DNA from: Octopus sinensis | Lineage: Eukaryota | Direction of reading: 5' to 3' | Assembly (NCBI RefSeq): GCF_006345805.1 | Contig: NW_021835990.1 | Location: 366,824-430,823, forward strand | Length of the DNA: 64,000 nt | Shown: positions 3,758 through 40,179 of the stretch, piece after piece | How positions within the stretch are numbered: position 1 is the first letter of the stretch | Layout: every line of letters starts with the position of its first letter | Notes under the pieces: model-generated | Seen by the model: the letters and a program-made list of their open reading frames with translations, nothing else | What the model was told of the DNA's origin: nothing | Databases searched by the model: none | Made by a program: the position numbers and the translations under genes

Positions 3758-3789
3758 CGTGCTATATGGTCAACAGCAATGGCATATGG

Positions 3790-4669: not shown

Positions 4670-4769
4670 AAAGCCTTCCGATTTTAACAAAAGCTATAAC
4701 TATTTGTAAAAAAATATTTCATAAAATATAATTAAATATTTTTCCTCCAAATTATTTTTTTCAAAATGT

Positions 4770-15412: not shown

Positions 15413-15904
15413 ACCAACTCTGATTTGAATTTTAAAGGTTGCACAGATATATGTCAGAAAAATAACCCAAAAAATAATCGACTTCATGAAGAATTAGATT
15501 GAATATTTATGTCAAGAATTAATATTTTATTATTTTTTCAAACTATTCTATCATTAGATGCACGTTTAGAAATATACAAAAATCATATTTAGAAAAACTC
15601 CATTATTTTTTGATAACTTTTCTCTAGTTTCTAGGTCGGCAAAAGCTGGCTTGCGTGCTTTTATAGACTGTAGTTATTAAAATAAGAATAGACACCCCGG
15701 TAAAAACTAATAGTCAAGTTAAAAACGTCAAGTTAGATATTTTTGTGTTTGATCTATCGAAAAATCAGAGAACGGTAAATGAACTCGGGGTCACATCCCA
15801 AGAAAACTTAAAGAAAAGGGTTTATTTTAAACAGCGCTTATCATCCGCATACAAAAAATTGGCTTAAAGCACTCCCTATATCAGCATGGGATTATTACTG
15901 AACA

Positions 15905-17060
15905 ATAAATCATGGCCAAGTAAGGCCTGTCGATTTCGAAAAATATCAAATTCTCTGACCGAATGCTATAAATTGCCTTTTCCTCGTCGACAAAATCGTG
16001 GTATTGGTGGTTTGTTAACGATTCCTGTCATGAAGGCAATAACCTACCTTCACCATATAATTTAATATCTAATTTAATAAAGAAATCGACACTTTCTTCT
16101 CCTTCGTCTCAAATGTTACTGAATTGGGGAAGGTTGAGGGAATCATACACCAAATGGCATCCATGTCCAACTCCAATGGACGACTATAATATTCCACACA
16201 CATAAAACCCGATTGTTTTCTTGATTATCTGAGCTCCAGTGTTACATATGACTCCCGCCATTTCCATGCTGTACCAACGTGCTCTATACGGTGGTTAACC
16301 AACTCAACACTTTCCGAATTACGTATCCATAAAATGAATTGAGAATACATTTGTGGGCTGATTGTAGCGAGTCGTAAATTATTAGCATTTCTGAACAGTT
16401 TTGTACAACTGAAGCACATTCCCCATTTTTTGTAGCTTCAGACAATTTTTTCTGCCAAACTTTGCACAATTCCTTATATTTGTAACGACGATCACGGAAA
16501 TCACGGACTGTGTTTATGTAGAAAGCATTGGCTCTCTGACACACCGTGACTTTCCGTTCAGTCACAACTGGCACGTGGACTCGGTGGTACACTTTGTGGC
16601 AATAATCTGAAAATATCAGCAAAAAATCAGTCAGACCTTTCAGACGTTTATTTTTGATCATTTTCTGCTCTTCTACTGGAATTTGCTGAAAGTGCATAAA
16701 AGCTTTTAGTTTTTCTGACCAAAATGATTCGTTGTTGAGTTGACGTTCTATCAATTTGAGTTCACCGGATGTAGCAGGCACTAAAATACGTTTTGACTAT
16801 AAACTGATTTGTCTTCGCCACCGCAATGTCATTGCCCGATGGCAGTTCAAATTGTGCTTACTGAAGGCACACGAAGGACAGACATTGTCATCTACCATTG
16901 CATAGGGCTAACATAATATAAAACAGTTACAACCTGCAGTCTGTTTGTTAGGATGACATTCGGGTACATTGCGCCAACATCGAGGTGATAAATCAATGGA
17001 TTGGCCGTAAAACACAAATTTTCTCTTAGTGCTTCAACCTTGTCTGTCAATGATGATAAA
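15905..17060 (-). pseudogene. POLE: DNA polymerase epsilon catalytic subunit fragment 1 (palm/fingers), truncated at both ends
   Basis: [80 protein letters not shown]. Introns of 24-30 nt. Confidence 0.92.
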
Positions 17061-18060
17061 ATCTTTAATAAAATTAGAAAATAAAAACCTCGTCGAAATT
17101 AAGGAAAATTCCAGCATAAAAAACGAATATAAAAAGCCGACGGCGCATCGTGTGTGTGTACTTGTCTAATGTCAGTGTCAGTTTGTGTTTGTCGAAGAGG
17201 CTCTTTTGTCACAATCCTTTCTGATAATGAGAGGGTGCTTGCATTTGGTCTCTTTATTTTTTTACTAGGAGAATGATGATCAGGTTGTCTACGATGAAAT
17301 GTTTGAGACTCCTGAGGAGGGAGTTTCTACACTTGTGAGACGGCTTTCGGATGCTGGATTTACTCAGACAAGCAATTTTGAATTCGAGACAGATGCCCCA
17401 GACGATGAGATTGTCTCTGCTCTCACTGAGGGCACTGGTTAAGTCTTCTTGTTTTTTCTAACTTGATTTGGTTTCTAAAATTTTTGGTTTTATTCTTAGT
17501 TAGACAGTAAAGTTGATTTTTCATTTTTGACAATTCCTTTGTTATTTAGTCGATAATTTATTTTGATGTTTTCACACTCGATTTAAATTGATTCATGCTT
17601 TATAAATTTTTAAAAGCAATTTGTTTTAGGAAATGTCAAAATAAGTAGTTTGACCTACATTTTGTATTTATATCAATCAAGTTTACATAATATTCAGTTT
17701 TGAACACGTTTTATAATCAACTATGTTAGCTTAGGGTTCAAAAAAAGATATTAAAGATCTAAGCGCATACAACGATTTAAGCTAGATTATATAAAATATA
17801 TATGATCTATAAGTAATGTATCGACAAGTTATTAGTAATGATATAGATACGTGAAAACAATGATAACACTAATTATTTAAAAAGAATTTTATGAAATATT
17901 TTTGTATTAGAAATTAATGAATTTATGCATAAATAAATATTTATTATAGTACATAAAATTATGGTGAATATGAATTTTAAAAATAATCTGAGGTTAACGA
18001 TATGGAGTAACAAAATTGAGATTGGAGTGTTTTTTAATCATTTCTTCTCGAATATCCAGC

Positions 18061-18250
18061 CGACAAGACAAGACAAGTTTTATTTCCCAACAAACCCATA
18101 AATTAAAGTTAGGGAGAAAGCCAAGAGCAGAACAAGAAACTAATTAATGTGGGTTTGATTTCATTGTATAGGCCCTATACAATGGCACCATGTCATACTT
18201 CCAAGATGACTATGCGATTTTTTCAAGAAAAGAAAGTAAACCTTTTAGGA
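18061..18250 (-). mobile_element. Possible LINE/SINE 3' end with (CTTGT)n tail
   Basis: Minus strand ends aataaaacttgtcttgtcttgtc. No coding motif recognised. Confidence 0.3.
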
Positions 18251-18612
18251 TAATCCAGAAGATCGCCTCGCTTGTTACACGTGTGGGATTATAACTTTGA
18301 TTATGTTCCTACGGACAGAGTCTTTTTTTCAACACAACTGACTGTATGTAGGTCCAAGTTCCATCTTCAACAAACAATCATTCGTTTCATAATCCCTAAG
18401 CATATTATATACATACGTAAATTTTAACACTATTTTATATCTTGAGAATATTTTTGATTCCTCATCCTTTGCCATCTGATTTTCCCAAAAACTGTTTTCG
18501 ATTTCTATGGTAATCATCTATTTTTCATAATAAACTTCAAGCTAAATGGAAACATTTCTAGAACTGCAAAAAATCATTTATTAAAATTTCATGTCTTCTA
18601 AAACTAATTTCG

Positions 18613-18800
18613 CCGGTTAATTCTAAGCACTCCTCCCACGAATAATAATTTTTTCTCATTCTTTGTTGAAATAAAAATATCATTTTGATTAAAAAATACT
18701 TTTTAATTGCAACCTTGTCTCCAGTTGATTTAACAATCCCCGTATATACAATTCCATACGTTCCATCTCCGAGAATTTTTGAAAATGAATATTTATCCAT
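18613..18800 (-). pseudogene. MAK: MAK/ICK-family kinase, N-terminal about 50 codons only
   Basis: MDKY...LGDGTYG.V...VAIK, a 39-nt intron, then MRKNYYSWEEC. Similarity stops before subdomain III is complete. Confidence 0.8.
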
Positions 18801-18958
18801 GTATTTATTTAGATACTACCAAATGTCATTAAACATCAAAACTTAAGAAAACCAAATGACCTTCTAACTTTATAATCAATATGTTTCCTTTCCTTTTTTT
18901 TTTTTTTTTTTGGGTTTTTTTTTTTTTTAATTAAGTAAATTATGATGTTAATTTATGA

Positions 18959-19170
18959 TGATATTTTGCTTTGCTCGTTTTCAACTTCAATATTCTAAAA
19001 TTATTATAACATTGAATAACTTTAGAATATCTATTAAAATTCTCTAAACTCCAACCCAAAATATTGAGCTTTTCGCCGAGTTGATTTCCTGGAAGAAGTA
19101 TGGCAACCAATTGAACAAATTGTTGTAATGACGTTGGAATTTGATAGTTTTTATATAAAATAGCTTTAAA
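18959..19170 (-). repeat. 212-bp identical copy of part of the basonuclin gene (21909-22120)
   Basis: Base-by-base identical, offset 2950. Confidence 0.95.
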
Positions 19171-19379
19171 TATGTTTCCTTGGTGATAAAATTTATTAAA
19201 AGTAATTTTTAAAAAAGTCTTGTCTTTTTTCCTGGTCTTTTTTCTGCTAAAACATTTGCTTTATTTAAGGAAATAAAATATAAACCTGAACTTCAAAACA
19301 TAAAGTAAGTTAAAACACAAATTTTATACAACAAATCCTTGCAATTGAGGTGCCAATTTTGTTTTTAGTTAATAGATCG

Positions 19380-20500
19380 CAAATAACAGCATCAGGAATT
19401 TTGAAACTTATTTTAACGAATAAATCTGGTAATATACTATTCATTAAAAACACAAAATTAAAAAATGATGTTATGCCAATTCAGAGTAGGATCCACACCC
19501 GTACAATAATATATATTTTTTCATTTTGACAAGTGAGACCAATCAGAACAGCTCGGGAAAATCTTTGAAAATACTTTTCCTTCCCAGAGGGGAACTTCAT
19601 CTGAATCATTAAAAAGTTCTACAAATGCAACAGAAGAGTCAAAATCAAAACAAGCTGTTTTAAAAAAATATTTAAAAATAATTATAGCTGCAAACTTTTA
19701 CCGAAAAGATCCTTTCCTTCCCACAATTTTCTTAAAAGCTCTCAAATCAATTGTAGGTTTATTAACTATAGTCCGAAAAGGAAATTTTTCATTGGAAAAT
19801 TGATACCCAACCACAAGAGGGCCCTGAGGAGCAGCTAACAAGTATGGAAATTTCTCAGTGCTAAAATTAATTGACCTTACCTATTAATAAGTAAATATAC
19901 TACGATTAATACAGTTTCATTAAGTCTTTGAGCAAAACAAGATCCGGACTTTATATTCAGAGGAATTGAAGCTTTTTTAATAGATGTTTTATCCCATATT
20001 TTTGAGATATGTTCCTCTAGAATATCATCAGGTTGAATATGAGAGAGATCGAAGGACTTCTCATTGCTCTGTTTTATTATCGAACTATTAAATAACAACC
20101 ATCTGAGTTCTATTACTACTCTTATTCTCGATTCTCGAAGAAAGTTCATTCCCAAAAGTCCTTGAATCCCTGAGAGCCGAACTTGGGTGATATCGAGGTT
20201 TATTTACCTAAAAAATAAGATTAAATAAGTATTAACTATTTGCTGACTTGGATGTTTCCACATATTTTTCGATTTAAAGAAGTTTAAACAACTTTAATGG
20301 CTGTAAGCTTTCAGTTCGGGCTTGAAAACGTCAGTATTGTTTAAAAATTCGAGATATTCAGAAGATAAAAGGAAAATTCGGAAATAATTGTTCTTCAAAA
20401 AAACGTAAGTCTCAGATTTAGCTTCTTTGAATAATTTCTTAAATTCAACAGATTCGTCCTTCATATTGACACTTAGATATATCCGACTAGCCATTTCAGG
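19380..20500 (-). CDS. Unidentified multi-exon host gene or gene fragment
   Basis: ORFs 19877-20155 and 20294-20494 plus further open stretches separated by short GT-AG segments. No confident family match. Confidence 0.35.
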
Positions 20501-21251
20501 AGAAAGACAAGAAATATTCTCGCGAATAAAAAACCGATGATAAAGAGATTTAACATGGTTGTAAAAAACAATTGGTTCGGTGATTTTGATAATTCAAAAT
20601 AAAATTCAAAATTTACAAGCAAAATAAAAGTCAAGACAGTCTCCAAGGTTTAACTTATCAAGGAATATCTTAAATCCCATTAATCCCTTTGAGTTTTTGA
20701 GTAGTTCATCAAAAGTGTTGAACCAAGAAGGCTCGTTGTTTTTCACGGATGTGATTTCAGCGCCGTTATCCATTTGATTTGTAATCCACTAAAGGAGGCA
20801 TCATCTGAGGCACAACCACTGCGCGCTTGCGTGGGTACTCGTGAGGAAAATCGGGTCAAAACGAGGAGTCTTCTCCTACGTGTTGGAATCACGAAATGTT
20901 ACTTGTCCTGTCTTTCGTATTTCTAATGGGAAATTGTTATGTTAATTAAGTGGAAAAGACATTGAGAGAGACGAAAACTTTATAGATCGCATGATAACCA
21001 AATATTTTTGCAAAGCGTGATAAATTTGATTTTCTAACTTCAAATTTTCCTAGAACTAAATTTCCAAATTTAGAAATTAGAAATTGTACAACGGTTGGTA
21101 GAAATCGAGAAGTGAGGTCTTTGGGGTAGCGAAATCTAATCCCTTTGAACCTTTTTAAAGTGGTAATTAGATCAAAACAAATAATTTTTCGATAGTAAAA
21201 ATAAGAAAACAAATTCACTTAATTTGAATGAAATGTTAGAAATATAGACAA

Positions 21252-22293
21252 TCACATTTTTTGATATGATAAATCTGATTTTGAAATCATTTTGGTGATA
21301 TCCCTTAGGGGGGTTTCTGACTTTTTCCTTAAAAAACGCGTTGAACAATGCAATTTAGGATTTTTATTAGCACTGTGTCTATTCCGACTTCTTCTGGAAG
21401 AAAAGCTCATTTTGCAGCCAGGTACAGTACAGTAATGAGATTCACACAAATGGACTGCACTCACATGTATTTTTAAGGCTCCTCGGTTGCAAAATGTCTT
21501 TCCACATTTGCTACAGAGAACTCGTTTCTTTCCGTTTCGTCCAGTTATGATACCTCCATAAAAATTTTGTTGGAATGAAAAATTTTCTTTGGATTTATGC
21601 TCACTATTTTCTGCGTAGCTATTGATTAACTGCTCTTGTGAAAATGCTTTCTGTATTACAAAATTTTGCATCTGCTTGGTGAAATTTTCATAAACTTGAC
21701 GCATATAAAGCTCATATTGGTATTGAAAGACAGAGTACATAAACATTCCTAAAATTGGAGAATTATTTTGATATAAATTTTCAACGTTGAACGTTGCATG
21801 TTGGGTATTCCTGGAATCATTTAGTCTGTACTGTTTTGAGGTATATGCTTGGCTATGATCTATATAAAGTTTTTGAATTTTTAATAAAATAAAGTTTTCT
21901 TCTTCTTTTGATATTTTGCTTTGCTCGTTTTCAACTTCAATATTCTAAAATTATTATAACATTGAATAACTTTAGAATATCTATTAAAATTCTCTAAACT
22001 CCAACCCAAAATATTGAGCTTTTCGCCGAGTTGATTTCCTGGAAGAAGTATGGCAACCAATTGAACAAATTGTTGTAATGACGTTGGAATTTGATAGTTT
22101 TTATATAAAATAGCTTTAAAAATTCCGATATAGATTTGAGATAATTGACGTTCGTTAGATTTTACTACAAAGTCAACTTTAGCATATAAGTCAAACCATG
22201 ACAGATCAAGAAATGATGGCAAGAATCACATTTACGATTCCAAGTAGATTTACATACGAATTTCTGGCAGGTACAAAGCGAGCATGAGTTCAT
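21252..22293 (-). CDS. BNC: Basonuclin/disconnected C2H2 zinc-finger transcription factor, compact and apparently complete
   Basis: N-terminal CSLCTCQKF...[21 protein letters not shown], and paired fingers [33 protein letters not shown]...[18 protein letters not shown]. Confidence 0.9.
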
Positions 22294-23162
22294 AAAGTTC
22301 TTAATATTTATATAAAAAATAATATCAACTTTATAGCAAATATTGTGCAAGCAAATTAATAATTTAAAACTGATATACGATATACTAAATTCATTTACAA
22401 TAACATTAAATCAAACAATATTGATAAACCACATTTTTAAGATTATAATCTTTATATAATATTAAAATCATTTATATGTTTAAAGTAAACATGGACAGTT
22501 ATTTTAAAACTGCTAGAAAAAATGTTAAACCTTATTAAAAAAAATTTCTGTTGAATCCATATTAAAAATGTGATTCAAAATACGGTGTTCTAGAAATTAT
22601 AGACACACAATGCGCAAATTGATTATTAACTGAACGTAAAGCATTTATATCAATGTTTCTGCAACGAACCTAAGGAACTATGTACGATCTAACTTAAGAT
22701 GTCAGACCTACAATGTAAATAAGAAAATAAATAAATTAATAAAAAATATTGTTATATATCAATTTTGATGTTTTATGAACGTTTTTTCATGCAGAACTGG
22801 AGTCAGACGTTCCTAGACCTTAGTTTCTTTATAGGCTACTACAATGTATGCTAATGGCCTATTCATAAGGACCCTTCTAGAAGAGGCCTGGAATTATGCA
22901 GTTTATTGATAAAATCTCTAGAATACATTAACAAATTCCCTAAAATGTTATAAATCAGTTAATTAACAAATTTGAAAAGCGGAACTGTCTGAACTTTAGA
23001 TATTTCTAACTAAAAATGAGTCTTTATTTCCCGACAAAACACCCCCCGAGATCTCCACTTGTGTGCAACCAATCGACCTGATTTTTCCAGGACAACTGCC
23101 TCCCTTGATCGTCTACTATATTAACTCGTTCAACCTCCTCTAAACCTTTTTACTATCTCATA

Positions 23163-23421
23163 CTAAGGAACTATGTACGATCTAACATAAGATCTCAGAC
23201 TTACAATGAAAATAAGATAAATAAATAAATTAATTAATAATATTGTTATATATCAATTTAGATGTTTTATGAACGTTTTTGCATGCAAAACTGGAGTCAG
23301 AAGCATATTATATACATACGTGAATTTTAACACTATTTTATATCTTGAGGATAGTTTTGATTCCTCATCCTTTGCCATCTGATTTTCCCAAAAACTGTTT
23401 TCGATTTCTATGGTCATCATC
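23163..23421 (+). repeat. Chimeric duplicate: 23163-23301 copies 22670-22807 and 23301-23421 copies 18398-18518
   Basis: Direct comparison; both parts carry several substitutions. Confidence 0.88.
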
Positions 23422-24499
23422 CATCATCCATTTTTCATAATAAGAGATTACACCCAAAGGAATACACGTCCGGGGGTAATTTCCTATTGGGATGTGCAGA
23501 TAGCGACAATGTTCAGTCAACTCCTTTCAAATAAATACAAATCAATACATTTAGTGTTTTTTTCAATTAAAAAAATATCGAATCATTGTCCTAGCTCCCA
23601 CACGCTGCCAATCCAAGACAGAAAAAAGAGATGGACTGGTGATTGAACCATACTAAACAACCTATCCTGTGATTTGATATTAACTACGGGTATGTTCTCT
23701 AAAAAAGGAAATGTTTCATGAAGCCGCTTTTTCTCTAAAAATGGCAGGAGTACTTATAAACCTGAACAAGACTGTATTACAAGACAACAAAGAGATTTAG
23801 ACAACGCGGAGATGGATTTGTTCAAAGAGCGAGAAACCTTATCCATTGAAGTCTCCGCTTTTACGGTAAAAACAAAGTCAGGAAAGTCATTTGTCGACTC
23901 ATTCAAATTCTCTGATCTTACAAAAATCAACAATCGACCACAAACCTAACCGAGGAGTAAATATCAGAAAAATTGGGCAGTTGAAATGATTTTCCTTTAT
24001 CGACGACATATATTTCAGCAGTCGACAACGAAACATTGAAAAAAACCTACAACCTGTTTAGTCTTTCTAAAAAGATGTAAAAAACGCTGTGAATTAGGCA
24101 TCTATTAAATTGTTTTGGGTGTATTTTGGGTTTTTTTATTTGACGATTAGTCTGTGAATTAGGCATCTATTAAATTGTTAATTAGTTTTAATGATTTTAT
24201 TGTTTTACGACATGTATGTTGACTAGCAGTGATTTTCTAGATGTATGCTATTATGTCGCGTCCCACACGAGCTACCCATCCCATGGTGGTTACATGTCAC
24301 CTGTCAATAAATAATAATGCCTGTCATGGTGACTGTCAAATTTAATAATTAATTTAATTGCATTGATTTTTAATCAATAATCGTTTCAACAATAAAAATT
24401 TATTAAAATAAAGCGTCTACGTTTTTTTAACTTGATTCATATTAACTATTTTAGACTTCCCTGAACTTGTTTTAATCTGTTAAATAAAATAATAATAAA

Positions 24500-25400
24500 A
24501 TAGACCTCTAGTCGATTGTTTGACAAAATTTGAACAACTTCAGCAGGTTCTCCATATGGGGATTCAAATCGGTTTAGCCTTAGGGAAGGATTTGTCCCAA
24601 AATCCTTTAGAACTCTAACCTAACAATTATTCACTAAAAATACTCCGCTCCCAATTGAAAAATCGTATTTCGATTGATGAACATTCATTTTTTTATTCAT
24701 GCGTTTAAAATATGGTGAATTTAAATTAGGTGGAGTAAAATTCAATATAAAATCACTAGCATACAAGTTTTCTAGCATATGTTATTCAAAATTTACCTGA
24801 AACATCTAGAATATTTTCTACATCCATATCCTCTGATGATACATGATAAAAATCATCCGAACACTCACTTTCTTTGAAATTAAAAAAATTAAAAAAACTT
24901 TTATCATCATGAATGACGGTGTTTATACCAGAAACTCCTCTTTGTTTTTTAAATGGTGTTTCATTTATAGAAGAATGAATAGTCGTGTTATATGTAAAAG
25001 TGCTTCGTTTAATAAATTGGATCCAGTTTTTAGTTGATTCTTCACTCATCAGCTTTGAAAGATTTCGTGTTAAAGTTTGATTAAATCTTTCCACGATACC
25101 CTGAAACAGATAAATATTGTGTCATTACTTGTGATTGAGGATGATTTGGTCTTCCGTAAATATGTTGGATTTTGTTTTTCGTGCAAAAAGAATCGAGATA
25201 TTTATTCCTAAACTCAGTTCCATTATCTGTTTGTAGAATCTCGCAAAAGCCGATTTCTGAACAAATTTCTTCGAAAGCCTCACAAATATCTAAATTCCAA
25301 TATAAAACATAAATATACTTATTGCAGATTTATTTTTAACTCCTTTACAAATGGCATACTTACTGTAAACATCAATGAAGGTAAATTTGACTATAGTATG
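24500..25400 (-). pseudogene. Integrase/transposase core and GPY/F-like tail with micro-introns; first catalytic D missing
   Basis: FIDVYSKY..KNKSA, intron 25290-25318, ILQTDNGTEF..GRPNHPQSQ, intron 25101-25128, GIVERFNQTL..YNTTIHSSINETPF, then FSIG..VRVLK..RFESPY. Confidence 0.88.
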
Positions 25401-25454
25401 ATATTCTGAGATATTTTTTACAAAACCTATTATCTTAATAATAAAATGGTATGG

Positions 25455-25501
25455 TGTGTGTCTGTCTGTCTGTCTGTCTGTGTGTCTGTCTGTCTGTCTG
25501 T
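25455..25501 (+). repeat. (GTCT)n/(GT)n microsatellite near the Helitron 5' end
   Basis: gtgtgtgtctgtctgtctgtctgtctgtgtgtctgtctgtctgtctgt. Confidence 0.95.
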
Positions 25502-25630
25502 GCACACCCACATTCAAATTGTTACAAACCAGATCAAATTGTCAAAACCTTCCCTTTTGTAGTTATTCGATAATGAGGCACAATAAAAGGTTGATATCCT
25601 CTAAGAACCTTCCTGTCAAAAAATTTTAAT

Positions 25631-28600
25631 AAGAAAGAATATCCTCGATGATGAGGTCCCCCAAAACCTTCAAGTCAATTTTCTGCGTTTTTGTTAAAAT
25701 GAACAACAAGAAAGTCCTCGACTCACATGATGTGGTCCCCCAAAACCTTCAAGCCAAAAAATTAAAAAAATTATTTTCTGCGTTTTTGTTAAAATGAACA
25801 ACAAGAAAGTCCTCGACTCACATGATGTGGTCCCCCAAAACCTTCAAGCCAAAAAATTAAAAAAAATTATTTTCTGCGTTTTTGTTAAAATGAACAACAA
25901 GAAAGTCCTCGACTCACATGATGTGGTCCCCCAAAACCTTCAAGCCAAAAAATTAAAAAAAATTATTTTCTGCGTTTTTGTTAAAATGAACAACAAGAAA
26001 GTCCTCGACTCACATGATGTGGTCCCCCAAAACCTTCAAGCCAAAAAATTAAAAAAAATTATTTTCTGCGTTTTTGTTAAAATGAACAACAAGAAAGTCC
26101 TCGACTCACATGATGTGGTCCCCCAAAACCTTCAAGCCAAAAAATTAAAAAAAATTATTTTCTGCGTTTTTGTTAAAATGAACAACAAGAAAGTCCTCGA
26201 CTCACATGATGTGGTCCCCCAAAACCTTCAAGGTAAAAAATTAAAAAAATTATTTTCTGCGTTTTTGTTAAAATGAACAACAAGAAAGTCCTCGACTCAC
26301 ATGATGTGGTCCTCCAAAACTTTCAAGCCAAAAAATTAAAAAAATTATTTTCTGCGTTTTTGTTAAAATAAACAACAAGAAAGTCCTCGACTCACATGAT
26401 GTGGTCCCCCAAAACCTTCAAGCCAAAAAATTAAAAAAAATTATTTTCTGCGTTTTTGTTAAAATGAACAACAAGAAATTCCTCGACTCACATGATGTGG
26501 TCCCTCAAAACCTTCAAGCCAAAAATTAAAAAAAATTATTTTCTGCGTTTTTGTTAAAATGAACAACAAGAAAGTCCTCGACTCACATGATGTGGTCCCT
26601 CAAAACCTTCAAGCCAAAAAATTTAAAAAAATTATTTTCTGCGTTTTTGTTAAATGAACAACAAGAAAGTCCTCGACTCACATGATGTGGTCCCCCAAAA
26701 CCTTCAAGCCCAAAAATTAAAAAAAATATTTTCTGCGTTTTTGTAAAAATGAACAACAAGAAAGTCCTCGACTCACATGATGTGGTCCCCCAAAACCTTC
26801 AAGCCAAAAAATTAAAAAAATTATTTTCTGCGTTTTTGTTAAAATGAACAACAAGAAAGTCCTCGACTCACATGATGTGGTCCCCCAAAACCTTCAAGCT
26901 AAAAAATTAAAAAAATTATTTTCTGCGTTTTTGTTAAAATGAACAACAAGAAAGTCCTCGACTCACATGATGTGGTCCCCCAAAACCTTCAAGCCAAAAA
27001 ATTAAAAAAAATTATTTTCTGCGTTTTTGTTAAAATGAACAACAAGAAAGTCCTCGACTCACATGATGTGGTCCCCCAAAACCTTCAAGCTAAAAAATTA
27101 AAAAAATTATTTTCTGCGTTTTTGTTAAAATGACCAACAAGAAAGTCCTCGACTCACATGATGTGGTCCCCCAAAACCTTCAAGCCACAAAATTAAAAAA
27201 AATTATTTTTTGCGTTTTTGTAAAAATGAACAACAAGAAAGTCCTCGACTCACATGATGTGGTCCCCCAAAACCTTCAAGCCAAAAAATTAAAAAAAATT
27301 ATTTTCTGCGTTTTTGTTAAAATGAACAACAAGAAAGTCCTCGACTCACATGATGTGGTCCCCCAAAACCTTCAAGCTAAAAAATTAAAAAAATTATTTT
27401 CTGCGTTTTTGTTAAAATGAACAACAAGAAAGTCCTCGACTCACATGATGTGGTCCCCCAAAACCTTCAAGCTAAAAAATTAAAAAAATTATTTTCTGCG
27501 TTTTTGTTAAAATGAACAGCAAGAAAGTCCTCGACTCACATGATGTGGTCCCCCAAAACCTTCAAGGTAAAAAATTAAAAAAATTTTTCTGCGTTTTTGT
27601 TAAAATGAACAACAAGAAAGTCCTCGACTCACATGATGTGGTCCCCCAAAACCTTCAAGGTAAAAAATTAAAAAAATTATTTTTTGCGTTTTTGTTAAAA
27701 TGAACAACAAGAAAGTCCTCGACTCACATGATGTGGTCCTCCAAAACTTTCAAGCCAAAAAAAAAAAATTATTTTCTGCGTTTTTGTTAAAATAAACAAC
27801 AAGAAAGTCCTCGACTCACATGATGTGGTCCCCCAAAACCTTCAAGCCAAAAAATTAAAAAAAATTATTTTCTGCGTTTTTGTTAAAATGAACAACAAGA
27901 AAGTCCTCGACTCACATGATGTGGTCCCCCAAAACCTTCAAGCCAAAAAATTAAAAAAAATTATTTTCTGCGTTTTTGTTAAAATGAACAACAAGAAAGT
28001 CCTCGAGTCACATGATGTGGTCCCCCAAAACCTTCAAGCTAAAAAATTAAAAAAATTTCTTTTCTGCGTTTTTGTTAAAATGAACAACAAGAAAGTCCTC
28101 GACTCACATGATGTGGTCCCCCAAAACCTTCAAGCCAAAAAATTAATAAAAATTATTTTCTGCGTTTTTGTTAAAATGAACAACAAGAAAGTCCTCGACT
28201 CACATGATGTGGTCCCCCAAAACCTTCAAGCTAAAAAATTAAAAAAATTATTTTCTGCGTTTTTGTTAAAATGAACAACAAGAAAGTCCTCGACTCACAT
28301 GATGTGGTCCCCCAAAACCTTCAAGGTAAAAAATTAAAAAAATTATTTTCTGCGTTTTTGTTAAAATGAACAACAAGAAAGTCCTCGACTCACATGATGT
28401 GGTCCCCCAAAACCTTCAAGATAAAAAATTAAAAAAATTATTTTCTGCGTTTTTGTTAAAATGAACAACAAGAAAGTCCTCGACTAACATGATGTGGTCC
28501 CCCAAAACCTTCAAGGTAAAAAATTAAAAAAATTATTTCTGCGTTTTTGTTAAAATGAACAACAAGAAAGTCCTCGACTCACATGATGTGGTCCCCTAAA

Positions 28601-29086
28601 ACCTTCAAGATAAAAAATTAAAAAATTATTTTCTGCGTTTTTGTTAAAATGAACAACAAGAAAGTCCTCGACTCACATGATGTGGTCCCCCAAAACTTTC
28701 AAGCCAAAAAATTAAAAAAATTATTTTCTGCGTTTTTGTTAAAATAAACAACAAGAAAGTCCTCGACTCACATGATGTGGTCCCCCAAAACCTTCAAGCT
28801 AAAAAATTAAAAAAATTATTTTCTGCGTTTTTGTTAAAATGAACAACAAGAAAGTCCTCGACTCACATGATGTGGTCCCCCAAAACCTTCAAGGTAAAAA
28901 ATTAAAAAAATTATTTTCTGCGTTTTTGTTAAAATGAACAACAAGAAAGTCCTCGACTCACATGATGTGGTCCCCCAAAACCTTCAAGCCCAAAAATTAA
29001 AAAAAAATATTTTCTGCGTTTTTGTTAAAATGAACGACAAGAAAGTCCTCGACTCACATGATGAGGTCCTCCACAACCTTCAAGCC
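25631..29086 (+). repeat. Tandem array of about 36 copies of a 95-97 bp (modal 96) unit
   Basis: Unit ATGAACAACAAGAAAGTCCTCGACTCACATGATGTGGTCCCCCAAAACCTTCAAGCCAAAAAATTAAAAAAAATTATTTTCTGCGTTTTTGTTAAA. Length varies in the A-tracts. Confidence 0.98.
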
Positions 29087-29800
29087 TCGTGAGGCCATTA
29101 ATTAGCTTAGCTATCTTTTTTCGATGACATAAATTCTTTTTTGTTAAATTTTCGTTAAAAAAATAAAATAAAAGCTCTAATTGTTATCGACCATGAATAG
29201 ACTGTGCAATTATCAGATTTTGAAAACCACTAAAAAGGAAAAAGCAAAAATTATTAGAGATTTACATAATTGATTCTTTTTAACTGCCGAAACTGACAAA
29301 TTCGATTATGCTACTGTTTAGATTTCTTAAAAGATAGAGGCAAATAAAATTTAAATTAGTCATGTAAATTTCAATTTGCCTATATTTAAATCTCCTTGAT
29401 TTAACAGGCTTTAATTTTTTTCCTTATAATACTACAAAGATGAAGCTGATTATCATTTTCTTTACCGAAACAGACAAGTTCGATTATGCTAAAGTTTCAA
29501 TTCCTTTAAACATAGAGGCAATTAAGTATAATGGCTTTGATTGGATAATACACTTTACATAAATTTCACTAAATAAATTTACGTAGAAAATTTAATATAA
29601 ATTACTGATTCGCGTTTACAAAATCATAAGAATGTCCTATAAAGAGAGATCTGAGAATGTTAACAAACAAGAGAATATGAACCATATAACAAAAAAGAGA
29701 AACGAGGGAAGATGTGCTTAAATGGTGAGGGAACTTAGACAACAGCTGAACAAGGTCAGGACTGCTGTTAGACTCAACTACGGGTAATAGAATTATGCAT

Positions 29801-30610
29801 TCTAGGTTAATTGTTTGGGATGAATGTACGATGGCTCATAAAGGCGCATTCAAGCAGTTGACCGAACATATAGAGATATCAAGAATTGTAGCGACCATTT
29901 GTTTGGGGGAGCATTAGTTGTATTGGCAGGTGATTTTAGACAGACGCTGCCAATTATTCAAAGAGGGACGCCTGCGGATGAATTGAATGCCTGCCTCAAA
30001 TCGTCATATTTGTGGACACACGTGAAAAAGGTAAGCTTAGATGTAAATGTACATGCACATTTACAAGGCGTTAATAGCATATTCCCACAAATCCTTCTAG
30101 ATATTGGAAATGGGGCAATCACTTCAGAAATGCACGACCAGAAAATTAGGCTACCGGAAGAATTATGTATTTTCGTAGAAACAGCAGAAGAATTATTGAA
30201 TGCCGTCTATTCCGAACTATCTGAACACTACGTGAATTTCGACTGGCTGCGTGAACGAGCTATATTAGCTCCACTTAATGATGAGGTACTTAATATAAAT
30301 TTAGATTTATTAATGAAAATCCCTGGCAGAGAAAGAATATATAAATCGGTCGACGTTATTATGGACCATGAAAGGGCCTGCGATAGATTTAAGAGACTAC
30401 AATTTCCGCTGAAGATAACAAAGGCCCTATGACAATAAACAAGGCCCAGGGACAGTCTTTAAAGGTAGTAGGCTTATTTTTAGAGAACGAGTGCTTTTCA
30501 CATGGCCAGCTGTATGTGGGGTGCTCAAGGGTAGGTAGAAGAGAAATTTATTTATATTTGCCAAGGATGGACGGACTGCAAACATCGTTTATCCACAGGC
30601 CTTAGAATAA
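29801..30610 (+). pseudogene. Helitron PIF1-like helicase C-terminal remnant, internally deleted
   Basis: [72 protein letters not shown]. Confidence 0.92.
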
Positions 30611-31009
30611 GGTTATATCAAAGCAGGTCGCATTTATATATCTACATAAATTTATAGTTATTTAAGGAAACTGCGAGCGTAGCGAGCAGGGCCTCCGCAG
30701 GAGCTAGCTCGCAGTGAGCGAAGCGAACTGCTGAGCTAGTTACATATACAGGGGAATACATTTTAAAGAGGAAATGTTGAAAATTGAATAATAACGCTAA
30801 AAATATTAAATATGCCCACACGAGTAACGAATGATTAAACCACATTAATTATGACATCTGACAGCCAATGACCTCGTAAAAATGATTGATTGACAGGTGA
30901 CATGTAGCCAGCATGGGATGCGTAACCACCATGGGACGCGACATATTATGACATATTTCTCGTAAATAAAAGTCATTAATTTAGTTCCGCTTAAGATTAA
31001 AAGTAAACT

Positions 31010-31200
31010 TTCGGAGGCCTAAGAATTTATGCCCTCGCCTTCGAGACCACTTGCCTGGTCGTTATAAAAGCTGAAAAGTTGTTACGGCTGGTGGGCGAAA
31101 AAATCGCATCAAAGATCAATGACCGGAGAAGGACGAGCTGGCTCTTCCAGCGCGTCTCGGTCTCAATTTTCTGAGGGAACTACCTCTTCGCCGAACTGAT
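31010..31200 (+). mobile_element. CRE-clade extreme 3' fragment
   Basis: LAFETT..IASKINDRRRTSWLFQRVSVSI..GN matches the end of the CRE ORF at 2288. Confidence 0.75.
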
Positions 31201-31534
31201 CCTCAAATTATTATGAATCCTGCCAATGCCTGAAGCCAACTTAGATATTTCAAGTTCTTCATTCGAATCTCACTAATTAAAGTAATTAGTTACTCATATG
31301 CCATTGTGAAAGATTTGTGTCATCATCCATGATTTCACAAATTATTCTGTAAAGAAAACACGTTGGAAATAATATTTGTTAAAAAAACTCATCTTCATTG
31401 TGAGACTTTCAAACACGGGAATATGCGGAATTAATCTGACGGAATCGAAAGGCATTTTTAATATTTTTAATGTTCTACGTTGCATTACTAAACCCTGCGT
31501 GAAACGCATTTTTCTTTAGGTTTTGAATGATGAC

Positions 31535-33195
31535 TAGGGCAATTTTTTGCCTAAAATGCCTTTTTGCACCAAAAGGTCTATTTATTTAAATAATTAATTT
31601 AAGCTATAATTTAATTAAAATAGATTTATCTACAACGAGTTATAAATGCCTTAAATGCTTAAAAAATTGTTAAGGTCCTAAAAAATTTTTTTAAGGTCCT
31701 AAAAATTTTTTTAAGGTCTTAAAAATTTTTAAAATAAATTATTTTTAAATGTTACAAAAAAATATTTTAAAAATAACAAATTAGGCACGCTATAAATTAC
31801 TTTTTTGTGTTCAAATGCCACGTGTACGTTCTACAATAAAGTCTAAAGCTCTAAAAGCCTATGAAACTTACGTAAAGAATTCACAGTGATTAAAGGCAGT
31901 CTATATTGTAAAATATGTATGATCTACGTCAATGCATCAAAAAAATATTATATTGATCAGCATAGACAATCTACAAAACATCTAAAGCTTTTGAGTAATT
32001 TAAAATTATTTTTTTTAGATAACAATGAAGGATTCCAACAATCCTTAGATTCCCTATTCAACAATCCTTAGATTTTAGATCTCAAAAGATTTTTATGGTT
32101 GTTGACGAGGGTGACGTAAATGGACAGAAGTTTGTAGTTGTTCTCATTGGGAATATCGCTTATCCAGAGAAGACCTATTTAATTTCGTGTGAACCTTTAT
32201 ATGAATCTGTAACTGCTAACACAATTCTTCAGATTATCGATGAAGAGATTAAAAAATTCGAGATTATACGCAATAATTTTCTTCTTTTTCTTTCTGATGC
32301 AGCCCCGTATATGATTTTGGGTAGTTTGTTGAATTATTTTTAGCCGGAAAAACATTGAAAATGCTTTATCCTAGGATGTTCCATGTAACATGTGTTGCAC
32401 ATTTGTTACATAATTGCTGTCTCAGAGTAAAGGCGTATTATTCGGACGTTGATAATCTTATTGCGACTATAAAGACATCAATAGTGAAAAACAAAACTAG
32501 AAAAAAAATGTTTTCTACAATTGGTTATCCGCCCGACGTCATCATAACTAGATGGGGTAGTTGGCTGCAAGCAGCATACTATTATGCAAATAATTTTGTA
32601 TCAATTGCTGAAATTGTGGAGAATTTCAAAGACGACGGAATATTAGTTAAAAAAGTAAAACAAGCAATTGAATCGCCAACCTTAAGAAAAAGTCTAATGG
32701 AAATAAATGAAAATTATCAGATACTTAATCAAATATTGAAAAAAATGGAATCCACAAGTTATACAATAAATGATGCACATTCAGATCTTTGTTTGTTAAA
32801 ATTTCCGTCTGATAATGCAGAAATAAATGAATACATACAAAAAAGATTACACAAAAATGACATAGAATCAATTATAGAAATGGAGAAAAGTAATATCTCC
32901 CCTGAAGAATATGGACTAATAAGAAAATGTCAGTGTACATCATCAACCGTTGAAAGAGCATTTTCTATGCTTAAAAAATTAATTACTAAAGATAGAGGTT
33001 TCAATGCGGAAAATGTCAAAAATTATTTAATACCTTACTATAACAAATAATTTTTTACGACTTTTTGATTTAATACCTTATTAAAATGTGCCTAAAAATG
33101 TAGAATAAAGTCCTAAAAATTAAAAATAAAGTCCTAAAATGCCTATTTTTAAGGTCCTAAAAATAAATTTTAAGTGCCTGAAAAAAATTGCCCTA
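31535..33195 (+). mobile_element. Complete-ended hAT transposon, internally deleted and frameshifted
   Basis: 14-bp perfect TIR TAGGGCAATTTTTT; 8-bp TSD ATGATGAC (31527-31534, 33196-33203); GTCCTAAAA subterminal repeats. BED-like CKIC..QH..STKH, VVDE, SDAAPYM, HVTCVAHLLH, TRWGSW, TVERAFS. 23-nt intron at 32321-32343. Confidence 0.93.
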
Positions 33196-33469
33196 ATGAT
33201 GACACATCCCTATTAGGATTTGTAGAACGTGCCACATTATATTTAATGTCTTTTAATTCCAAATCGTAAGAAATTCTCAAATCCACGATATATTCCAAGG
33301 TAGGAATGATAACCAACTTGATTTAAAACAGAAGTCTTATCTAAGGTCTCTTTTTAACATGTTATCATACATACTGTATGCATGTAACATACAGGAATAT
33401 TCTGGTCGTCCAATGGGCAAGGACAATAAATAATTTCATTTCACTCGTTAATACTCACTTCTTTTTAAA

Positions 33470-36400
33470 AAAATTTTTCTTTTTTTTATTTCCATCGAGT
33501 CCAAGAAGCCTTCTCGCCTTGTCTTCTTGCTTTTGGGGATGAGAAACACGGGGACTCCCCTTTCTGTTGATTTTGAGTCGTTGTTTGATAGCCTATAGAT
33601 TTAAGGAAAAATTAAGTCACATGAGTCACAATCATCTTCTGATAGTCATTCTTGACAGACATAAACAGATCTAACCAACTGAACATTCGATCGTGGTATT
33701 CCAATGTTGGAATTGTGATGGAAAAGTTGCTAAATTCCAAAAACTTGTTATCCAAACTCTGCAAAATTATCGATACAAAACAACCTTAAAACTAATTAGA
33801 AGGGGAACTTGAGTGATCTTGACGTACACAAACTGCATGTTGGAGGCTGCCCTGTCCTGGGGTGAGTGGGGAGGGTACTTTCATGATAGTCACGTCGTCC
33901 CGATATTCGGTAGACCCACTCTCCTTACTCCGCTTATTCTTTATGGATATCCCTACAAATGAACTCATCGACACACCAGATGACTGACTGAAGAAGAATT
34001 GAACCACCAACAAGTAAAAGTCATAGGTGAGGTAGGCGGATGTGGGAGCTACATTGATCTCCAAATGTTCCTTCATGGATATTCCCCCAACTGGGACTCC
34101 CTCCCGACAGTATATCCGCACTGAGGGACTGTGGGCAGATGGGTTCTCCTCGTCCGTAGGAATAATCACGTCCTTCAGAATAAGTGAAGACACAACTCTG
34201 TAAAACGAGTTGGGATGCAGATCCGACACCTTAAACCAACCCAAGTGAAGTAAATGTGACTTGGTGTCGTCTGCAGACCCAATTTTGTTATATCTAATCA
34301 TGCCAGGACAGAAAATGACAGAAAGTTGCTGATAATGACATTGAGTTGACTATCGTCATGAGTGATAGTCCACTCTGCGTGCTTGAAACATATCTCGAGG
34401 GTGTGAAGTGGGGGAGTGAGGTCTGGGAGGGTCAGTGAGTGTGCTAGCAATTGATGTCTCCTCTTATTATAGCAACTAAGAATACAACAAGGAGGACTGA
34501 TACCACAACATATGTGACAATTCTTGACTTGTGCTGTACAACTCCTTTCGAGTAGATTTGATTCGATCCCTCAGTCTGGTGAGTAGTTCACACCGCCCGC
34601 CATGCTCACGAACCAGAAAGTAATGCTCTCTCTCCAATTTCCTCCACTCCCCTGCCAACTCTCTGCACTTGTCAATACAAACAGACCTGAGGACGTTCTT
34701 CAGTTCGAATATACGATTAAGGTGTTCCGGAAGTGTACACAAGTCGAGTTGAAGTCTCATTTCCTGCAGTCTGTCCAACGACCTTTTACGTTCGGGGTCA
34801 AAGTAGAGAAGGAGGTTGTTCACAATGTCAATAATCACCGAATATTGCCATTTGTTAGTCGATATTGACAGGTCGTGGTGAAGCATTGTGAATGTCTCCA
34901 GACTGTCCTCGTCCTCGGAGGGAGGCTGGCCATCACTCACCAACAATTCCTCGATGGCCGCGTAGGACGAGTAGAATATGTCACAACGACACCTCGACAC
35001 TATTCTCTCCAGATTGCCCCCTTCGTTCGCATTGGCAAAATACTGCATAAATATGGCCCACTCACCTCCATTGAGTCGATAGTCCCAATCCAACTTATTT
35101 TCGACCTCAGAACGTTGTTCTTCCACACCAATCCGTGCTCACGTTGGAAGAACTGGGCTTTCCTAGCTACAGCCATAATGAAGCCCGATTGGACCACCAA
35201 ACTCAATTGGACATTCCTAAATTCGACTGCACTCAGTCAGTCCACTCACCTAAACAATTCCGACTTGTCACATCATTACTTCCACACGACTTTGGTCCTG
35301 ACAGATCATCCACCAGACATGTCTGTGTCTACCAATCAACACATTCCATCACTACGTCTCCAGTCACGTAAAACTTGTTTTCCACGTCGGCCACCAGTCG
35401 CTCCAACAAGTCCGGAGTCCACTCATCCTGCTCGACCAACTCCTCTCTGGATTCGACCACCTCCTGTTCGTGTCGTTTAATGCAGGAGATTATCCCCGAA
35501 AGTAAATTACGGCGGAGAATGACCCCTCGTTGGTAGTGATTCATCAACTCATAAAATACGGCTCTGTTCTCGTTAGTTCACCTCACCACAGTGTCCTTCA
35601 CTATTACATTGTGTTTGTGCTGAATGTCAATATAACTACATGCCTGGTAGGTTGACTCGATCTCCGTGGAGGCGGTGGGGGGAGACAATCTGGTCTCGAT
35701 GGGGGAGTGGTAATATCGCAGTCTAAAACGTAACCAAAAACACTCACGAGTCAAACTTAATCAGAAAATTGGCTTCATCACGTTTATTACCGAACAAGTC
35801 AACGTTGACCCTCTCCTGTATGAAATGAAAAGACTTGATTTTCCACACAGTGACTGGTCGTCTGAGTACATTCCCTTGGAGGGGGAGGACAGAGTAGTCC
35901 AGGCAACTGTCCAAGGACACGGAACCCCCCTTTAGTTGTACCCATCCACCATTTCCCCCGTCATCCAGTATTCAATCACAAAACTGTCCAGATTCATAGC
36001 AATGTTAAACTCTCTACTCATAGTGGAATATATCACCTGAAATGGCGAGAAAGTTGTATTCTTTTGTAGAATGGTCGTCCAAAGAGAGGACCCAGGCGGA
36101 TCGGACGGGTGAGTTGTTGGATTGTTGTCTACAGGTGGTCAAGTGAGGACAGCAATAATGTCGAATATCCAATTAATCGACCCCGAATAGAATTTGAGAG
36201 ACGAGAGAGAAACATTACTCGAAATACTCAACTTGACATCCATCCCACTCGACCTGAAAGCCCGAAATGTGTCGTGTGTCTGCATCACTCAAATATTCTC
36301 ACCAAAACATCTACGACGTACTTCCGGTGGATTGGAATCACCGTAAGCATCACCAGGACATATCCAGGAGACTTTGGCCCTACCACTCAGCCAAAAAACA

Positions 36401-37810
36401 CCACTCAAAGCAGGCATTCGGAATATGCACCAGTCGATAATCGTCATAACTCGAGGCAGTCTTGCAGTTTATTTGCAAGTCTCCGTTCAACACAAACTTC
36501 CCTGCCATGAACTGATGAGAGTAACCACATGTGTTCTCAAACACGAGAGACTCCCAGGACCACTCGATGAACTCAGCCGAGTTGTATGGGTCATTCGTAA
36601 GGCGGTACATCAACGATAACTTTAGTCGGGCTCTCCAATTTCCGTGAAGAACGTAGCGGAACATGTCGAACCAACTCAACTTGGGACTGCAATCTCGACT
36701 GGGCGACGTTATCAAGTCAAGGCAGTGGAAAAATTAGAGCGAAGGCTCGATGCTGGGTCCGTAGGCCACTCTCACTTGCCCCGACTCTACCATCCACGTA
36801 TACAAATACTCGAATCGAGGTCGTAGAAATACTTGAGGGGGCACAGTGACTTTCGAATCTCGAAATCCCCGAATGGAATGACGACTTGTTCTACCAGTAG
36901 GCACACTAATCTACTCAAATATGCCCCCGTCAGTTCTGCCCCTCTCAACAGTCCCCAAAATCGACAATTATTCCAGACGATAAGGGGCACGGAATAGTCC
37001 CGGAGAGCACTCCTCATTTCGTCAAACTCAAAAATGACATAACGACAAAAGAGAGTGCTGAATGATGTCTCCCCACCGTCAAAACTACTCCTCGCTCACA
37101 CAATCCACCATTCAGGCTCCACTCGCTTCATAAACCCCAGAATATTATCCTCCCCAAAAACGGAGGGGTCTGACAGGGCTTTGAAAGAGACCCCCTCCAG
37201 ACTGATCCGACAGAGGGTTTTGATCCCTTCTTGTTGCCGACGGTGAATCCCCACCCGCTCAATGTACGCGGAGGAATTCTTTTGCTCCACTGTGGCGTAC
37301 AATTCATCCATTTTGTCGACTTTTATGACACACAACACTCACTCGACATGCTTGCCCCCATTTCCTGCAGTTGTTTTTCCAGAATGACTGATCTCTGCAC
37401 CTTTTCCACAAACTCATCACTCAGTAACTGGAATATGACTTATTCCCTACTCTGAAGTTGCTCAATATCCTGTTCTCGAATGGGTCGTCCTCGAATACCA
37501 CAGAAAAGTGCTGGGAATGATAAGGACTCGCACATTTATGCTGATATTCAAGTCACTCATCAACGTCGGGGCTGAATCGGGGACATTTCTCAACTTTTTG
37601 TGGACAATCCTCATTATTTTAAAGGCGTCCTTCAACTGAACACTCACAATAATAACTACCGCCACAAAACAGGCATCAAAGTTGTAATTAAATGGAAAAA
37701 CCACGTGAAATGACCCGAACGTGTAATCTCTGACAATATGACACCAATACCGCGATATCACATAACGACAGTTCAGTCCAGCCAGACTTGTCATCTCATC
37801 TCCCAAAATC
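33470..37810 (-). pseudogene. BLTP2: BLTP2/KIAA0100 (hobbit/Fmp27) lipid-transfer protein, C-terminal half, 5'-truncated
   Basis: Colinear motifs FGSFHVVFPFNYNF, LRDYSVPL, TNDPYNSAE..TASSYDD, IIDIVNNLLL, PVGGISMKEH.EINV.P, TLEYHDR..SWLD, EDKARRLLG. Many 22-28 nt introns. Confidence 0.88.
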
Positions 37811-37821
37811 TACAAAAAACT

Positions 37822-38216
37822 AAAAGTCTGCACGTCGGCCAGTCTCTTTGCGGTAGTCCAAATTCCGTGACATGTTCCTACTTTCCGTAATCAAGTCAAA
37901 CAGTTCAGAGTTGGTCAAATTCGATCCCAAACAATAAAAGTATTTAAAATATACTTTTGAGTATAAAAGACATCGGTTGGCCACCTCAGCAGCACTCCCA
38001 AGCGCCATTTCCAGTGTATCCCCATTCAATAATGCGGGGAAAATCGATGATTGAAAATTTTTGACCAATTCCAATTCCCCGCGACGTTTTATTTCAAATC
38101 CCTGAATAACTTTGAATTGACACTCAAACTTTGAGCTCCACCAGTTTTTTGATGTGATCAAAGACGGCGTACCGTTTTTTGAGTTCCTTCCCCTCGTCTT
38201 TGGCCGCGGGCTCCAA
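37822..38216 (-). pseudogene. POLE: DNA polymerase epsilon catalytic subunit fragment 2 (thumb region)
   Basis: [58 protein letters not shown]. Confidence 0.9.
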
Positions 38217-38344
38217 ACACTTGCCATTCCTACATTCAAAACCAATTCCTACCCGATTCGGAACAACTTGGAGGCCGAGCACGACATCCGCCAACCTCAC
38301 AGTAAACCAAGTCTCAGCACTGCGCGTGTCAACCACCAAATACT

Positions 38345-39612: not shown

Positions 39613-39779
39613 TCAATCCAATACTCACTCGTCAGAGGATGTGACGGCCGGACGAATGGAGGTACTGCTCGGAAATACATGTTCTCCGTCCGAGTCCTGC
39701 TCCTCACATTCCCCGCAACCAGTCCAAAGTCCTTCAACTCAACCAAATCGCCCACTCTGGACGATATCCTCGACAAAAT

Positions 39780-40130
39780 ATTGAACAGCTCAAAGAACAA
39801 GGCAGTACACAGCAGCATAGTATCGAAGAACGAGGCAGTGCACAGCCCGCGAGGACTGCGGAATATCGGGAATATATGTTTCATAAACTTAGTGGTGCAA
39901 TGTCTGTTGAGTGTGAGGAGACTGACGTACTACTTTGGATAGTGTAAGAAGTGAGTGTTGTGCGAACTATTCCACAGTCTAATGGTGGAGGAGAGTGAGA
40001 TGAGTGGAGTGCGGGTATGACCATGACTCAGTGCCAGGACTTTTTAGCCGAGAACTGTGTGTCCTACTCCAAGGGACAACAACACGACGCACACGAGTTC
40101 CTCAACTTTATATTGGATCTACTCAAAAAA
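39780..40130 (+). pseudogene. Ubiquitin-specific protease fragment (Cys box and QxD box)
   Basis: PRGLRNIGNICFINLVVQCL, then GQQHDAHEFLNFILDLL; truncated. Confidence 0.75.
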
Positions 40131-40179
40131 AATGTCATAGAGTAATAAAAATAAATTTGCTTTGTATGTTAAAAAGTTG

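Follow-up and report, generated by a model that had tools for sequence, protein, structure and literature searches.

Abutting, order-swapped fragments of POLE in a patchwork of gene and transposon pieces

Here, we describe two pieces of POLE, the gene of DNA polymerase epsilon, in a stretch of 64,000 nucleotides (nt) of contig NW_021835990.1 from the Octopus sinensis assembly GCF_006345805.1, hereafter the window. The two pieces, shards A and B, lie about 21 kb apart, both on the minus strand and in swapped order, and on the parent gene the end of A and the start of B meet with a gap of 0 ± 1 codon. This abutting, order-swapped arrangement is real and non-random, and the two shards most likely come from one POLE copy that was cut at one point. 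On balance, and with slightly better than even confidence, we regard A, B and a weaker third shard, C, as pieces of one partial, intron-bearing POLE copy that was rearranged by non-homologous break-and-rejoin within a repeat-rich patchwork.

To place the pieces, we built a profile hidden Markov model (HMM) of 2163 positions from 51 full-length POLEs, and full-length POLEs were also run against the window by tblastn. Reading the minus strand, FFEIDRPYLAMI stops at 15908, the end of shard A, where the last POLE-homologous codon is an ATT, and the shard B peptide begins at 38210. The profile HMM assigns positions about 560-899 to shard A (17059 to 15908) and 901-1040 to shard B (38210 to 37750). 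With the reference protein P0207, tblastn yields residues 599-914 for A and 916-1056 for B, one residue apart; with P0172, the corresponding boundary falls between residue 833 (end of A) and residue 835 (start of B). Aligned to human POLE (E-values of 1e-38 for A and 1e-22 for B), shard A has I941 as its last residue, and the ‘LEPAAK’ of shard B corresponds to I941-L942-P943-A-S-K. An earlier note on this DNA had reported two POLE pieces 21 kb apart on the same strand in permuted order, with ends abutting within one or two codons; both peptide strings are where it placed them, and the abutment is borne out by all three comparisons. Its description of the pieces as ‘halves’ of POLE has to be abandoned, since A and B cover about 480 of the 2163 profile positions (562-1040, joined by 1476-1593 when C is counted). 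The window lacks about 80% of POLE, and the exonuclease domain is among the missing parts.

Local DNA alignment at the junction revealed POLE homology past the break in neither A nor B, so that the shards neither overlap nor hide a decayed partner. In a simulation of three random POLE shards of these sizes, any pair abutted within ±1 position with P = 0.008. Such a pair cleanly marks a single double-strand break and the way it was repaired, which could be read at nucleotide level with the parent gene.

Do A and B stem from the same copy? Relative to the identities among the 51 reference POLEs, both have diverged equally (mean identity 47.1% against 52.4% between references for A, 51.4% against 58.1% for B). 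Their coding GC contents are similar (40% in A, about 43% in B), and B forms a local GC dip between neighbours of 47-52%; separate parents for A, with its AT-rich surroundings, and B, within a GC-rich island, were rejected on these grounds. Defect densities are alike as well, with three defects over 1164 nt of A and 461 nt of B (binomial P ~0.2; an earlier tally of two defects had given P = 0.08 for the split). A and B resemble parts of a single copy that are equally young and are both decaying. The proposal of the earlier note that a single POLE copy was broken once is supported by the abutment, the shared strand, the equal relative divergence and the similar GC content and defect density; pieces of different age or parent, which would have spoken against it, were not seen in the comparison with the 51 POLEs or in composition.

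Shard A (15899 to 17062, minus strand) comprises seven coding blocks of the palm and fingers (profile 562-899, human residues ~600-941), separated by six GT..AG micro-introns (16933-16908, 16804-16781, 16636-16607, 16308-16284, 16208-16184 and 16047-16025). The 26-nt GTTGTAACTGTTTTATATTATGTTAG between NRLQ and P.AMVDD is one of these. Once the introns are removed, shard A forms one open alignment over profile positions 562-899 with 483 bits. When the stretch 16092-16069 is kept, the score rises to 501 bits, while keeping a true 30-nt intron lowers it to 469 bits. The higher score and the register shared with other POLEs indicate that this stretch is coding sequence rather than a seventh intron, and it carries an in-frame TAG at 16071-16069. 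At columns invariant in all 51 reference POLEs, shard A differs at 6 of 50, where any real POLE differs at no more than 2 of 52. Motif C (16190-16170) reads ELDMDAIW instead of the ELDTDGIW of 51/51 reference POLEs, changing the catalytic DTDG to DMDA, and QRA stands for QRE, L for W, and R for the G of FE.DGPY. An entirely intact, possibly functional shard A was rejected on account of the TAG in the supposed seventh intron and these changed residues. Upstream, 17063 to 17148 (minus strand) may, on direct reading, continue the shard: a candidate 26-nt GT..AG intron (17088-17063) follows a putative exon that ends in ..NFDE and has an ATG at 17148. The spacing from NFDE to PLIYHLD equals that of human NFEE; the profile match stops at 17059, and POLE similarity fades further upstream.

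Shard B (37750 to 38216, minus strand) encodes part of the thumb domain (PF22634 POL2_thumb; profile 901-1040, human residues 942 to ~1085; profile scores 74 + 20 bits). It retains two GT..AG introns of 28 nt (38129-38102) and 24 nt (37833-37810), and a third, in-frame intron of 27 nt (37954-37928) has lost its acceptor, reading GT..TG for GT..AG. An extra G at 37859/37858 causes a +1 frameshift between ..SRNL and TTAKRLAD, and the last block, behind the 24-nt intron, reads ILGDEMTSLAGLNCRYVISR. Only one of 20 POLE-invariant columns is changed.

All introns of shards A and B are 23-30 nt long, each lies where the POLE alignment is continuous, and their excision restores the frame; the shards were hence copied from genomic DNA, not from spliced mRNA. 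Indeed, the apparent frame changes arise because these GT..AG micro-introns are retained. A and B are unprocessed, DNA-level, intron-bearing pseudogene fragments, combining partial homology to a parent gene with kept introns and disabling mutations. Neither poly(A) nor a flanking direct repeat was found at A or B. Retro-pseudogenes as the source of the frame changes, and retrocopies as the source of the GC-rich island, were rejected once the micro-introns were recognized, as was a processed or circular RNA (circRNA)-derived retrocopy, given the kept introns and the lack of poly(A). Gene fragments that appear ‘frameshifted’ here are intron-bearing DNA copies, and annotation must allow for introns of 23-30 nt.

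Among animals, introns this short have been reported only in myxobolid myxozoans and Dicyema (PMC13644364), the latter with a median intron length of 27 bp (PMC6543705). The GC content of the window, about 36%, is closer to that of D. japonicum (36.7%, PMC6736024) than to that of Henneguya (29.1%). The closest named POLEs are a mixture of flatworms, an acanthocephalan, nematodes, Hydra and fungi. An exact-ORF look-up gave no match, and no database protein exceeds ~58% identity. From such sequence features the host can be placed only as a probable micro-intron animal, dicyemid-like or myxobolid-like, and its affinity by POLE is mixed.

The third POLE shard, C (23467 to 23888, minus strand; profile 1476-1593, PF08490 DUF1744), represents the start of the C-terminal half of the gene. 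It sits between A and B on the same strand, and its match is weaker than theirs. C contains DWQRVGARTMIRYF and RYLHIPIGNYP, switches frame and shows more decay; behind it, 23443-23301 is a copy of 18533-18398 with 92% identity. The resulting order B-C-A, all on the minus strand, is a rotation of A-B-C and has P = 0.083 (1 in 12) under random shuffling.

Immediately upstream of B, a shard of the RNA polymerase III largest subunit, RPC1/POLR3A (38238 to 39628, minus strand; human residues ~310-706, NADFDGDEMN intact), is joined in the same reading frame, which continues across the join into PAAKDEGK..; its last ~100 nt (NRVGIGFE for NRGFSIGIGD) are tentatively assigned by eye. A predicted chimeric open frame of 84 codons (38124-38378, minus strand) runs without a stop from the RPC1-like ..PNRVGIGFE.. 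into the PAAKDEGK.. of shard B. Directly downstream of B follows a Hobbit/BLTP2 shard (33792 to 37017, minus strand), collinear over Pfam positions 1140-2177 of 2372 and with a stop at 33792. Head to head with the RPC1 shard lie a ubiquitin hydrolase piece (UCH, profile 1-109 of 254) and then a glycogen phosphorylase piece (PYG, 423-613 of 713), at 39610 to 40745 on the plus strand; the remaining parts of PYG were not found in the 64-kb window. Within 20-30 nt of the end of A, a 51-nt scrap of an open reading frame (ORF) like that of long interspersed nuclear elements (LINEs; 15828 to 15878, plus strand) encodes ..HPHTKNWLKALPI, which matches QPHTRNWLKALPT at 2926-2976 (84% over 51 nt); it is an internal fragment of a transposable element, not an element terminus. 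Beyond it lies a 162-nt scrap of an endonuclease-like domain (KLDIFVFD..ELGVT; 15655 to 15816, plus strand) resembling 57117-57278 (tblastx, 48% over 54 amino acids). Insertion of a LINE at the break by target-primed reverse transcription was rejected, since the scrap comes from the interior of the ORF, stands in the wrong order relative to its neighbour and is not a 3' end.

Based on this layout, we propose that a copy of the host POLE would have been severed a single time, between the codons corresponding to human I941 and P943, and that the cut ends would have been joined by non-homologous repair to unrelated DNA, namely RPC1 before B and transposon scraps after A. One block would then have moved, either by a three-break insertional transposition or by a multi-break shatter-and-rejoin, giving B-C-A on one strand, and the resulting pieces would be non-functional and neutrally decaying. 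Block transposition or shatter-and-rejoin is favoured and agrees with flanks that are abrupt and unrelated and with scraps that are tiny. A simple insertion was rejected, as it would give A-X-B and not B-X-A, and a tandem duplication is uneconomical, requiring two later deletions that end at the same point. Both this route and rotation through a circle accord with the single copy and single break proposed by the earlier note. Taken alone, a rearranged, unprocessed pseudogene fragment of this kind is ordinary and adds one more case to a familiar class.

Several points weigh against break-and-rejoin of this kind. The former contiguity of the pieces at this site, the repair route, the exact breakpoints and the age of the shards are inferred. 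One shared strand together with rotated gene order is expected from random rejoining only 1 time in 12. Each of the RPC1-POLE-Hobbit and UCH-PYG chains runs in a single orientation, a hint that something more orderly may have acted, for instance capture by a mobile element; this uniformity, shared by POLE shards A, B and C, suggests more order than random ligation would give. Finally, shard A has few disabling lesions for the extent of its change at invariant sites when compared with simple neutral decay, unless the POLE of the host was already unusual. Either the host POLE already departed from the norm there, or indels seldom occur in this genome.

Could the rotated order reflect a circle? 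A circle of ~22 kb, formed as extrachromosomal circular DNA or as a Helitron-type rolling-circle product, could have carried the POLE copy, opened inside POLE and been reinserted to leave B...C...A, a reading also offered by the earlier note and one that we consider unlikely. It accounts for B-C-A on one strand as an exact rotation, and an in-frame TGTT occurs where A ends (15904-15901) and again where B starts (38219-38216), the pattern expected from a staggered opening of the circle. The TGTT match is weak (P ~0.1, since the ends can be placed with some freedom); neither it nor the rotation (P ~0.08) is significant, and a block transposition with three breaks accounts for this layout too. 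The interval also holds a PIF1-like, Helitron-type helicase ORF (29750-30602), but this is a truncated scrap, cut by the right edge of a satellite. Somatic circular DNAs and genome rearrangement have been reported in dicyemids (PMC6543705), which would fit if the host is a dicyemid. Against a circle, a repeat search and reading of the island borders revealed no circle-closing junction, no Helitron termini and no flanking target duplication. Moreover, the outer flanks (RPC1 on one side, transposable element scraps on the other) are unlike one interrupted target, and four breaks are needed instead of the three of a block transposition.

The arrangement may alternatively be absent from the germline, the contig being a chimera (from amplification chimeras or thin long-read coverage) or the assembler having merged somatically rearranged DNA; we judge this improbable, if slightly less so than the readings that follow it. 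Dozens of unrelated short pieces are abruptly joined here, and tiny parasites are often sequenced after whole-genome amplification. The frameshift in shard B is a change in length from G to GG, an error typical of long reads. Preparations of dicyemid DNA have been reported to include circular and rearranged molecules, and whole DNA extracts assembled from short reads gave a highly fragmented result (PMC6543705). Fresh chimeras of real genes would, though, be expected to lack the substitutions, the stop codon and the altered invariant residues of these shards. The identities of local duplicates in the window, 92-99.5%, indicate events spread over time and, with the accumulated substitutions, favour rearrangements that are real and older. 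The junctions are far too numerous for ordinary misassembly, and intact genes stand on the same contig.

A further and quite improbable reading makes the patchwork the product or the substrate of the developmental rearrangement and circular-DNA formation reported in dicyemids, its pieces having been excised as circles and reinserted, or else kept in germline-limited DNA. If this were so, the rotated order B-C-A would be a trace of such a process, at sequence level, in an animal.

We regard it as very unlikely that POLE was captured twice independently, with fragment ends dictated by an exon boundary or by a hot spot of breakage, a possibility that the earlier note had also set aside. An AG directly precedes B, a GT lies 9 nt past the last homologous codon of A, and the similarity of B stops at a GT; with about one intron per 150 nt, the gene would offer only ~50 boundaries. 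The AG before B, however, falls in a codon whose aligned counterpart is POLE L942 or RPC1 sequence, and the POLE of the acanthocephalan Pomphorhynchus has a single exon across the site. Equal divergence and composition fit one event, and the kept introns oppose a mechanism linked to splicing.

Just as improbable is a functional gene in pieces, whose segments would be stored scrambled and joined by programmed DNA rearrangement or trans-splicing. Although the shards tile without overlap, the six introns of A keep GT..AG, the open-frame cost per kb is like that of real genes and developmental genome rearrangement has been reported in dicyemids (PMC6543705), A is interrupted by an in-frame TAG and B by a frameshift and the loss of an acceptor, the catalytic DTDG reads DMDA with five more invariant residues changed, ~80% of POLE is missing from the 64 kb, and the shards, some of them duplicated, are fused directly to coding fragments of other genes. 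Gene scrambling in the programmed sense, raised by the earlier note, conflicts with these lesions and fusions.

How does the arrangement compare with known systems? Scrambled genes of ciliates, with their macronuclear-destined segments and internal eliminated sequences (MDS/IES), as in the DNA polymerase alpha of Oxytricha, likewise have out-of-order polymerase segments on one strand, and TGTT might pass for a short ‘pointer’. They differ in that the host here is an animal, a stop and a frameshift are present, little of the gene remains, coding pieces of other genes are joined directly to the segments and the pointer has only 4 nt; shards A, B and C do not encode an intact gene. Unprocessed pseudogene fragments in mosaics of segmental duplications (for example in pericentromeric or subtelomeric regions, or on B or sex-limited chromosomes) share the introns, the few disabling mutations and neighbours taken from unrelated genes, transposons and satellites, whereas the pieces here are very small (50 nt-3.5 kb), derive from at least 10 genes in 40 kb and include two exactly abutting partners in swapped order. 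Capture by Helitrons or Pack-MULEs also yields chains of intron-bearing fragments in one orientation, as in RPC1-POLE-Hobbit and UCH-PYG, and a PIF1-like helicase fragment is nearby. A repeat search and border reading around the island at 33.75-40.75 kb, however, revealed no element termini, hairpin, terminal inverted repeats, target duplication or circle-closing junction, and the helicase is truncated.

Chromothripsis, chromoanasynthesis and templated filler DNA resemble the patchwork in their many abruptly joined short segments and in parting neighbouring gene segments with clean abutting ends. They have been described chiefly in tumours and congenital rearrangements, on a scale of kb to Mb. 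The local duplicates here are of varied age (92-99.5%), in contrast, which suggests repeated events and not one catastrophe. Processed pseudogenes and permuted ones derived from circRNAs share permuted parts with abutting outer ends, but here introns are kept, the parts lie 21 kb apart with unrelated DNA between them, and there is no back-splice junction or poly(A).

Are abutting partners common in the window? The partner search used Pfam scans of the long open stretches at 14-25, 29-41 and 49.5-56.7 kb, of 1.5-4.7 kb and of selected ORFs elsewhere, with 4.7-14 kb and parts of 41-49 and 57-64 kb read by eye only. Within this scope, no abutting partners were found for the RPC1, Hobbit, UCH, PYG and Raptor shards. 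The only related case is a collinear split in an Axin-like RGS domain at profile position 47/48, with the C-terminal half at ~20.5 kb, 2.2 kb from the N-terminal half. The latter forms one of the local duplicates (22742-22962, minus strand, and 5859-6079, plus strand; 96.8%, inverted). Two further duplicates are direct, 18959-19173 with 21909-22123 (99.5%) and 18398-18533 with 23301-23443 (91.6%); all are 100-220 bp long.

Truncated pieces of at least 10 other genes lie within 40 kb, including UCH, PYG, Raptor_N (profile 89-151 of 151; 51171-51524, minus strand), a Myb-like domain (~53-54 kb, minus strand), RGS/DIX, AlaRS and a kinase. In a crude open-frame cost model the gene shards are far more open on the sense strand than shuffled sequence, which indicates that they are not old. 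RIP-like mutation (of the repeat-induced point type) was rejected by dinucleotide ratios, and tRNA and Rfam scans of the sequence found nothing. Two nearby minus-strand genes are apparently intact: a cyclin (41850-42862) with a complete Cyclin_N in one 229-codon exon, and a multi-exon cathepsin L-like peptidase (~47500-48900) split by micro-introns. Their presence indicates that the region is ordinary chromosome, and both would be useful internal controls for what real genes look like in this genome. Shards of at least 10 housekeeping genes and transposon scraps beside intact genes suggest that cutting and rejoining, or capture, has been unusually active in a parasite group with poorly known genome dynamics.

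The fragments of transposable elements are LINE-like, PIF1-helicase, hAT-like, mariner and integrase pieces, and shards and scraps together range from 50 nt to 3.5 kb. The truncated copies include a Tc1/mariner DDE_3 transposase (44145-44426, minus strand), a hAT-like transposase C-terminus lacking a Pfam match (32029-33047, plus strand) and an integrase core (24789-25121, minus strand). A GC-rich (48%) LINE-like retroelement at ~1500-4700, coding on the minus strand, shows a YLDD reverse-transcriptase motif, a CCHC knuckle and an endonuclease-like C-terminus with RPDG..D; a Pfam scan of it gave no match. Scraps of this element or of its relatives are present at 15655-15878, ~50.5 kb, 54843-55136 and 57099-57506.

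The satellite that cuts the helicase ORF (25678-29086, ~3.4 kb) consists of ~36 copies of a 95-bp unit with 96% identity and can also be read as a 191-bp higher-order unit. A 34-nt piece beside it (29086-29119) recurs in inverted orientation at 45332-45299. A second tandem repeat of 33 bp, with a 132-bp higher-order unit (45952-46457), lies within a long open frame for an acidic repeat, ..DEYYDSNELNM... Outside the window, annotated ‘proteins’ of the cyst nematode Heterodera trifolii (KAL3088214-17; P0121 and its cluster mates) consist of four tandem copies of a ~50-residue POLE segment from the region of shard A, which indicates that POLE fragments have been amplified in a cyst nematode too.

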